64,000 nucleotides of DNA. Source: Thecamonas trahens ATCC 50062. Taxonomy: Eukaryota; Protista; Apusomonadida. The notes beneath the pieces are model-generated. The model was not told the origin of the DNA. It saw only the letters and a list, made by a program, of their open reading frames with translations, and made no database searches. The DNA lies in assembly GCF_000142905.1 (NCBI RefSeq), contig NW_013657640.1:61208-125207 (forward strand). The letters run 5' to 3'. Shown in pieces: positions 1-1,251 of this stretch. The position numbers and the translations under genes were made by a program. How positions within the stretch are numbered: position 1 is the first letter of the stretch; each line of letters opens with the position of its first letter.

Positions 1-134
1 GACCCAAAGGAAAATGGTGAATGACAAGGAAGGTACCTGGGGAGGTGGGGAGGGAGGGGGGGGGGGTATATGCATGGCCATTGTGAGAGATACAATCAAG
101 TTTGTGACTAACAAAGTATATGATGATGATGTAG

Positions 135-1172
135 ACATGAAGGTCGATAACTGTGCTATCTGCCGTAACCACATCATGGAGCTGTGTACGTACAGAGGTC
201 TTTACCTGAGGGTGTTCCTCCCCCTCCCCCTTCCCCCCCCTCCCTCTCGTCCCGCCCCGCCTCCTCTTCTCCCTCTCCCTCTCACAGCCCCTGCCCCCCC
301 CCCCTACCTGTCCCTATGCCACTCATCATGACTCATCATACGACACACATCTGTTGTTCACAAACACAGGCATCGAGTGTCAGGCAAATGAGGCCTCTGC
401 TACCAGTGATGAGTGCACAGTGGTACGTTCTGTGTCGTCATCGGCATCACCTGCGTGTGAACCCGGTGAGACAGTGGGGTATAGCCATGGCAATGGCCAT
501 GGAGATGACAATGGCCATGGAGATGACAATGGCCATGGAGATGACAATGGCCATGGAGATGGCAATGGTGTGTGTTCTGTACAAGCAGATCGTCAAGATG
601 TTTGCTGCATGCGCTGGTTCGGCGGCGGACAGTGGCTGGAGGTGGGTGGGTGATGGGGAGGGAACTCACGTGGTTACTGGGTGTGGGTGTATATAGGCCT
701 GGGGTATCTGCAACCACCCCTTCCATTTCCATGTACGTACAGATCTGCCCGTGTCCCCTTTCCCTCCTCCCCCTCCCTCCTCCCCCTCCCTCCTCCCCCT
801 CCCTCCTCCTCGCATACTCACGCAGTCTCTCTCTATCTATCTCCTCGACTTGGCACATAGTGGTACGCATAGCAACGAGATCTGAAGGCCGTCGCTTCAT
901 TGTGTCTCCCCCTCCCCCCTCCCCCCTCCCTCTCTCCCGATGTCGGTACTCACATTCTCTCTCTCTATCTCTCTCTTTCTCTCCCTCGCGTCATAATCCC
1001 CACAGCATCAGTACGTTCATCACCGCCTCCCCTTCCCTCTCCCTGCCCTATCTTTCCTGGCGAACATACTCACTGCACGCGGTCATTCATTTGTACAGGC
1101 CGGTGGCTGCAGACCCGCCAGGTCTGCCCGCTCGACAACACAGCATGGGAGTTCCAGCGCTACGGATCGTAG
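135..1172 (+). CDS. RBX1: RING-box protein 1 (RBX1/ROC1), 3' part; exons 135-185, 370-422, 697-732, 861-862, 1006-1010, 1099-1172; 5' exon(s) not identified, probably upstream of the window
   Basis: Spliced translation (D)[72 protein letters not shown] matches the RBX1 RING-H2 sequence. All introns are GTACG(T/C)...YAG with ACTCAY-type branch motifs. Confidence 0.95.
485..568. repeat. 18-bp tandem repeat (GGCCATGGAGATGACAAT), about 4 copies, inside an RBX1 intron
   Basis: Seen directly; it explains the spurious GHGDDN/MAMEMT ORFs. Confidence 0.85.
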
Positions 1173-1251
1173 CCGCAGCAGCAGTCTCGACAGCATCATC
1201 AACACACAACCCAACAGACACGTAGACTTGCCCTTCATTTCCCTGTTCCGT

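Follow-up and report, generated by a model that had tools for sequence, protein, structure and literature searches.

Consecutive Exons of 2 and 5 Nucleotides Very Probably Supply the Cys-Ile-Ser Motif of RBX1 in Thecamonas trahens

Introduction

The RBX1 gene of Thecamonas trahens ATCC 50062 was studied in a 64,000-nt stretch of genomic DNA (contig NW_013657640.1, positions 61,208 to 125,207 of the forward strand), which is called the window throughout and whose first letter is position 1. The locus raises the question of where the cysteine of a conserved Cys-Ile-Ser (CIS) motif comes from. The exon whose peptide ends in ...HFH stops at position 732 and, as a preliminary description of this DNA had stated, translation gives no continuous frame with CIS after HFH. 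The same description placed the missing letters in two micro-exons, TG at 861–862 and CATCA at 1006–1010. The sequence is exactly as claimed at both places, and TG, CATCA and the GC that opens the last exon join to TGC ATC AGC, that is Cys-Ile-Ser, in frame.

Each of the 11 RBX1 homologues aligned here, which represent plants, fungi, animals, an amoebozoan, and stramenopile and other protists, contains CIS, and so does the solved human RBX1 chain aligned to the NCBI protein of the locus. On established knowledge of RING-H2 domains, the Cys of HFHC in RBX1 is metal (zinc) ligand 6, within H-x2-C.

Results and Discussion

Gene Identity and Public Gene Model

The protein deposited at NCBI for this locus, "RING-box protein 1A" (71 aa), was the one match of a protein search with the open frame around the last exon and is identical to the exon peptides of the window. 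It contains PF12678 (zf-rbx1) and PF12861 and shares 80–84% identity with the RBX1 proteins of plants, fungi and animals. Among solved structures, the closest relatives are chains of human RBX1, with E values of about 1e-39. The queries of all searches were individual exons, open frames or this NCBI protein. In this model the sequence reads HFH-VR-RWL, in which VR replaces CIS and no cysteine is left. The exon ending at 732 runs on for four bases, up to a GT at 737, and is joined to 1099, by which the frame is kept and the Cys is lost. Among the aligned RBX1 proteins (the NCBI model and the 11 homologues) the NCBI model alone is without CIS. Standard gene finders had been expected to miss exons of this size, and the VR found in place of CIS bears this out.

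In RBX1 the N-terminal strand WNAVALWAW inserts into cullin. The NCBI model begins at an internal Met and is without the corresponding strand of T. trahens, (K)WSAVALWAW (WNAVALWAW elsewhere), which is coded by the RNA contig ends that precede position 135. In the RNA the RING-H2 ligands are complete, with the Cys formed by TG (861–862) and C (1006) and the other ligand columns lying in exon peptides. The RBX1 model deposited for T. trahens is incorrect and should be revised.

Exon-Intron Organization of the RBX1 Locus

The features of the locus, all on the forward strand, are as follows.

1–134, forward strand: 3′ part of an RBX1 intron; acceptor TGTAG at 130–134, donor upstream of the window
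104–111, forward strand: branch-like motif TGACTAAC in the intron ending at 134
135–185, forward strand: RBX1 exon coding for VDNCAIC and ending with the first base of a Cys codon (RNA contig pieces, joint 185>370, frame)
186–369, forward strand: RBX1 intron, GTACGT to CACAG, at the ancient position L-phase 1-C (joint in four RNA runs)
370–422, forward strand: RBX1 exon that opens by completing the Cys codon (RNA contigs, frame)
423–696, forward strand: RBX1 intron, GTACGT to TATAG (RNA joint 422>697)
697–732, forward strand: RBX1 exon with peptide end ...HFH, followed by GTACGT (RNA contigs, frame)
733–860, forward strand: intron A, with donor GTACGT, a C-rich tract, TACTCAC at 815–821 and acceptor CATAG (absent from RNA)
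861–862, forward strand: micro-exon 1, TG, bases 1–2 of the Cys codon (sole canonical decomposition of the seven RNA letters)
863–1005, forward strand: intron B, with donor GTACGC, a C-rich tract, TACTCAC at 947–953 and acceptor CACAG
1006–1010, forward strand: micro-exon 2, CATCA, comprising base 3 of the Cys codon, the Ile codon and base 1 of the Ser codon (sole canonical decomposition)
1011–1098, forward strand: intron C, with donor GTACGT, TACTCAC at 1067–1073 and acceptor TACAG
1099–1223, forward strand: last RBX1 exon, starting GC CGG TGG, in which GC ends the Ser codon (RNA contig pieces, translation)

Six introns were counted in the window from the frame and the RNA joints, in agreement with the at least six that had been proposed for this gene. 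The stop codon lies at 1170–1172, and the 3′ UTR reaches to at least 1223 (contig pieces 1099–1215, 1099–1219 and 1099–1223). According to the loose ends of the four RNA contigs, an exon upstream of 135, coding for ...(K)WSAVALWAW and the first base of an Asn codon, sits outside the window. A first exon model with an ATG at 14–32 and an exon start at 117 was ruled out by the RNA, in which the exon starts at 135.

The intron at 423–696 carries an 18-nt tandem repeat, ATGGCCATGGAGATGACA, in about 4.5 copies at about 484–569, and a stretch on contig 70 is 76% similar to this repeat region.

RNA Evidence for the Seven Letters

RNA runs with matches to positions 1–2600 of the window were sought, and four public runs were mapped onto the window. 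The evidence consists of assembled contigs, one per run, of 277–354 nt. In the four runs the contigs showed zero mismatches to the RBX1 exons and 3′ UTR and contained the joints 185>370, 422>697 and 732>1099. Between 732 and 1099 exactly seven extra letters, TGCATCA, were found in each of the four runs, which is the string that had been predicted for the cDNA at this junction. The runs belong to four studies. In two of them the contigs are identical in both length and depth, which may mean that a single data set was deposited under two entries; three or four independent observations are therefore counted. The included form alone was represented at 732/1099 (4/4 runs; contigs drop rare variants). 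Constitutive inclusion of both micro-exons is consistent with all four runs, minor isoforms being invisible in contigs, as are splicing intermediates and the order in which the introns leave.

Two of the runs with mismatch-free T. trahens RBX1 contigs are a marine and a subsurface metatranscriptome. Their presence there reflects either a wide occurrence of the strain or carry-over between libraries.

Genomic Source of TGCATCA

Because seven letters in a contig cannot be assigned to a genomic position, the possible splits of TGCATCA were enumerated. Ordered pieces were sought within 733–1098; each had to have AG directly before it and GT or GC directly after it, and no intron could be shorter than 20 nt. 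Among all decompositions of TGCATCA in this 366-nt gap there was one solution, TG at 861–862 with CATCA at 1006–1010, and a contiguous TGCATCA did not occur within 733–1098. Not one of 20,000 dinucleotide-preserving shuffles of the gap gave any decomposition, nor did any of 2,344 other 366-nt stretches of the window, taken on either strand. A composite scan (branch motif 8–62 nt before AG, then 1–12 nt, then a GTA[ACT]G[TC] donor) returned two matches on both strands of the 64-kb window, and these were the two RBX1 micro-exons. The micro-exon arrangement is far beyond chance, and the enumeration and the shuffles leave the 2-nt and 5-nt exon pair, as it had been proposed, as the sole canonical source of TGCATCA.

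Alternative Explanations

The seven letters could in principle have reached the RNA by other ways. The contigs are tied to the locus by identity alone, and some stretches of the assembly read N, among them the DNA immediately upstream of the window. A second RBX1 copy with an uninterrupted CIS, either a retrocopy or a paralogue in an unassembled or masked part of the genome, might thus be the source of the transcript, the locus in the window then being a pseudogene. However, the contigs are mismatch-free over the exons and the 3′ UTR of the window, and the genome offers no such copy in the searches made. The peptides of the last exon and of the exon at 135–185 had one genomic match each in the readable stretches of the 28.7-Mb assembly, and no retrocopy, which would match both exon peptides, was found in the assembly search. 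A Pfam zf-rbx1 scan gave many RING-H2 proteins in long ORFs, among which the RBX1 locus and APC11 (contig 32) were the sole RING-box genes. The second intact RBX1 locus against which the preliminary description had cautioned was found neither with the exon peptides nor in the zf-rbx1 scan. If the RNA did come from elsewhere, the ordered TG and CATCA with perfect signals in the gap would be a coincidence of a kind seen in 0/20,000 shuffles, and this origin is considered very improbable.

It is slightly less probable still that TGCATCA was drawn from the gap by non-canonical sites or in another partition. The contigs do not place the letters, which speaks for such a source, whereas the gap holds neither a contiguous TGCATCA nor another partition flanked by AG and by GT or GC, and the proposed sites each have the GTACG donor preferred in this genome together with TACTCAC. 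Least probable, to the point of near exclusion, is that the version deposited at NCBI is right, with a donor GT at 737, an acceptor at 1098 and an RBX1 without the sixth RING ligand. This junction was seen in none of the four runs, all of which show 732+TGCATCA+1099, so that it is refuted as the main form, and it would delete a residue conserved in 11/11 homologues. Very probably, then, T. trahens has a single RBX1 gene in which three complete spliceosomal introns around a 2-nt and a 5-nt exon restore Cys-Ile-Ser.

Splice Signals and Proposed Mechanism

Each of the three introns had been described as possessing its own TACTCAC branch motif, and one was located in each, at 815–821 in A, 947–953 in B and 1067–1073 in C. 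The putative branch adenosines, at 820, 952 and 1072, lie 40, 53 and 26 nt upstream of the acceptors of introns A, B and C, respectively, and in all three the acceptor is the first AG that lies more than a few bases beyond TACTCAC. In the window GTACGT and GTACGC occur at about twice the expected frequency and GTAAGT is depleted. Donors of the GTACG type also flank introns in the genes for calmodulin, a proteasome subunit and other proteins.

The excision of introns A, B and C would join CAT-TG-CATCA-GC and thereby give TGC ATC AGC. An exon of 2 nt is too short to hold exon-side signals, and it is therefore proposed that each intron is recognised alone (intron definition) by means of its strong intronic signals. 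The removal would be sequential rather than simultaneous, because spliceosomes cannot occupy both borders of a 2-nt exon together. Judged from these signals, strict intron definition at the RBX1 micro-exons is a reasonable reading. If TG, CATCA or both were skipped, the frame would move by 2, 5 or 7 bases and the last two metal ligands would be lost, and for this reason inclusion should be essentially constitutive.

A co-evolved U1 snRNA was considered as a counterpart of the GTACG donors and rejected: the 5′ end of U1 is the standard ACUUACCU, with which the C at donor position +4 remains a mismatch. The single U1 candidate (contig 10, 232060–232228) has a canonical 5′ end and scores 52 bits, below the Rfam gathering score of 69.5. 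No match with RF00004 (U2 snRNA) was obtained in the genome. The snRNAs of the T. trahens lineage seem to be divergent.

Two other introns were noted in passing. A neighbouring gene has a 533-nt intron at 1976–2508 of the window (minus strand), with donor GTACGA and TGACTAAC about 65 nt before the acceptor; a contig joint for it is present in one RNA run, and no internal AG was seen before the acceptor. APC11 (contig 32, 18335–21442, minus strand) has a single intron with a GTATGT donor, ACTCAC and TATAG. Inside, the APC11 intron consists of a (GGGAGG)n tract, which is complementary to the C-rich tracts of the RBX1 introns.

Other Ultra-Short Exons in the Genome

In a genome-wide search the pattern ACTCAC-N12–42-AG-N1–9-GTACG had 146 matches, against 203 in a backwards control, and was thus not enriched, which indicates that ultra-short exons are rare in T. 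trahens and not a general habit. Inspection of 12 matches showed that most were ordinary exons starting near GTACG; one was convincing. This is calmodulin (contig 35, 334000–336500, reverse strand), the reading of which requires a 9-nt exon, ATCAACGAG (1221–1229 of the reverse complement), coding for INE between ...AELQDM and VDADGNG. The exon has a CCCTAG acceptor and a GTACGT donor and is followed by an intron of roughly 700 nt that ends before VDADGNGTIDF.

A further site, on contig 13 (403200–405700, reverse strand; position 1284 of the reverse complement), reads CACAG-C-GTACGC, with ACTCAC upstream and C-rich, intron-like flanks. Its sequence makes it a candidate for either a 1-nt exon or a recursive splice site.

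Intron Positions and Origin

A comparison of RBX1 intron positions, which the preliminary description had suggested as a check, was carried out with six distant eukaryotes, Acanthamoeba, Arabidopsis lyrata, Rhizophagus, Apostichopus, Sorochytrium and Phytophthora, taking the first base of the Cys codon as zero. The T. trahens introns lie at −140, −89, −36, 0, +2 and +7. Position −140 (WAW, phase 1) is common to T. trahens and five of the six other eukaryotes. Position −89 (L-phase 1-C) is likewise shared with five of the six, namely Acanthamoeba, Arabidopsis, Rhizophagus, Apostichopus and Sorochytrium. Introns at 0, +2 and +7 were present in 0/6 other eukaryotes, and thus introns A, B and C are lineage-specific as far as this six-species sample shows. 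Neither a protein search nor a metagenome scan yielded an apusomonad-like RBX1.

The annotated RBX1 of Sorochytrium milnesiophthora reads ...EVKKA-YIVVDNC, without WNAVALWAWD. Probably this annotation misses a small exon or misjoins at the ancient −140 intron.

Introns A and B resemble each other. Their local alignment scores 63 (shuffle mean 25.7, maximum 38), a similarity that is partly due to low-complexity C/T tracts. Both contain, in the same order, GTACG, AGATCTG, a C-rich tract, TACTCAC and, 4 nt beyond it, a shared 13-mer. The 13-mer alone has 38 copies in the genome, and the composite of branch motif and 13-mer occurs twice in the 28.7 Mb, in introns A and B, 132 nt apart. The intron at 186–369 scores 52–53 against A and B through the C-rich tract. 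No long-period (roughly 130-nt) repeat was detected by TRF, which reported short-period C/T repeats only. An introner-like family was also considered and dismissed, as the matches to the RBX1 introns outside the locus were low-complexity C/T tracts only.

From these likenesses it appears rather likely that, of introns A and B, one was copied from the other. That all three introns go back to a single intron copied locally more than once, through transposition or through tandem duplication with an acceptor shift, is a more tentative proposal that we hold to be somewhat doubtful. Under this proposal, intron A would have been copied to a site 2 bases downstream, giving intron B. Intron transposition by reverse splicing could place a precise copy 2 bases downstream in one step and leave the mRNA unchanged; a tandem duplication of the intron together with TG would have to be followed by a shift of the acceptor. 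Both routes of intron gain have been reviewed, including cases from Oikopleura and Mycosphaerella (PMC3443670). Introns A and B of RBX1 appear similar along their whole length, in part through low-complexity C/T tracts, as a copy and its source would be; unlike in other cases of intron gain, the putative copy is only 2 coding bases away from its source.

Comparison with Known Systems

The RBX1 pair is an extreme case of the already known ultra-short exons. A full-text literature search turned up neither a relevant account of an exon of 2 nt nor a paper linking Thecamonas with micro-exons. APC11 is the sister family of RBX1, and the presence of ultra-short exons in both is taken to be a coincidence. 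In land-plant APC11 a constitutive 1-nt exon was proven by mutagenesis (Guo & Liu 2015, PMC4674806), and it is conserved across land plants (Yu et al. 2022, PMC8831610). As in plant APC11, a sub-codon exon of RBX1 stands between canonical GT-AG introns, the ultra-short exons preserve the reading frame of an essential, small E3 subunit of the RING-box type, and the reference annotation missed them and made a frame-preserving wrong junction. In contrast to plant APC11, RBX1 has tandem 2-nt and 5-nt exons, with three introns within 7 coding bases, the site lies in the RING core (ligand 6), and the gene belongs to an apusomonad protist, whose splice signals (GTACG donor, TACTCAC) are strict in the manner of yeast. 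Whereas the plant exon was established by mutagenesis, the RBX1 case is built on RNA contigs and sequence logic.

Other ultra-short exons are the 1-nt exon of VPS55 and the adjacent 5-nt and 12-nt exons of rice Os08t0562700 (PMC8831610), and the 1-nt exon of Fusarium CYP621A (PMC12940212). As in these genes, the ultra-short coding exons of RBX1 were missed by aligners or gene finders and are confirmed by RNA; unlike in these genes, the RBX1 pair totals 7 nt and neither exon holds a full codon in frame.

Recursive splice sites are zero-length exons, AG|GT, and RBX1 resembles them, and also the stwintrons (nested introns) of fungi (PMC8469720), in that an acceptor and a donor nearly overlap, so that the splicing of neighbouring introns must be sequential. 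RBX1 differs from recursive sites in keeping 2 and 5 bases in the mRNA, and from stwintrons in that each intron is complete, no signal being interrupted by another intron.

Conclusions

T. trahens, a close outgroup of animals plus fungi, is a phylogenetically important organism. The wrong RBX1 model and the 9-nt exon of calmodulin make it likely that the T. trahens proteome has more errors of this kind, which would spread into comparative studies.

A 2-nt exon beside a 5-nt exon, both needed by an essential protein, means that splice-site recognition without exon-side information is possible in this lineage, and the 366-nt stretch with its three introns is a compact natural substrate for studying the order of intron removal. 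The shared old positions, together with the lineage-specific, copy-like introns, make local intron copying testable in other apusomonads. If the proposed origin is true, RBX1 of T. trahens would be a rare natural record of a spliceosomal intron spreading to a neighbouring site, and a spliceosome with strict intronic signals would have no lower limit of exon length.
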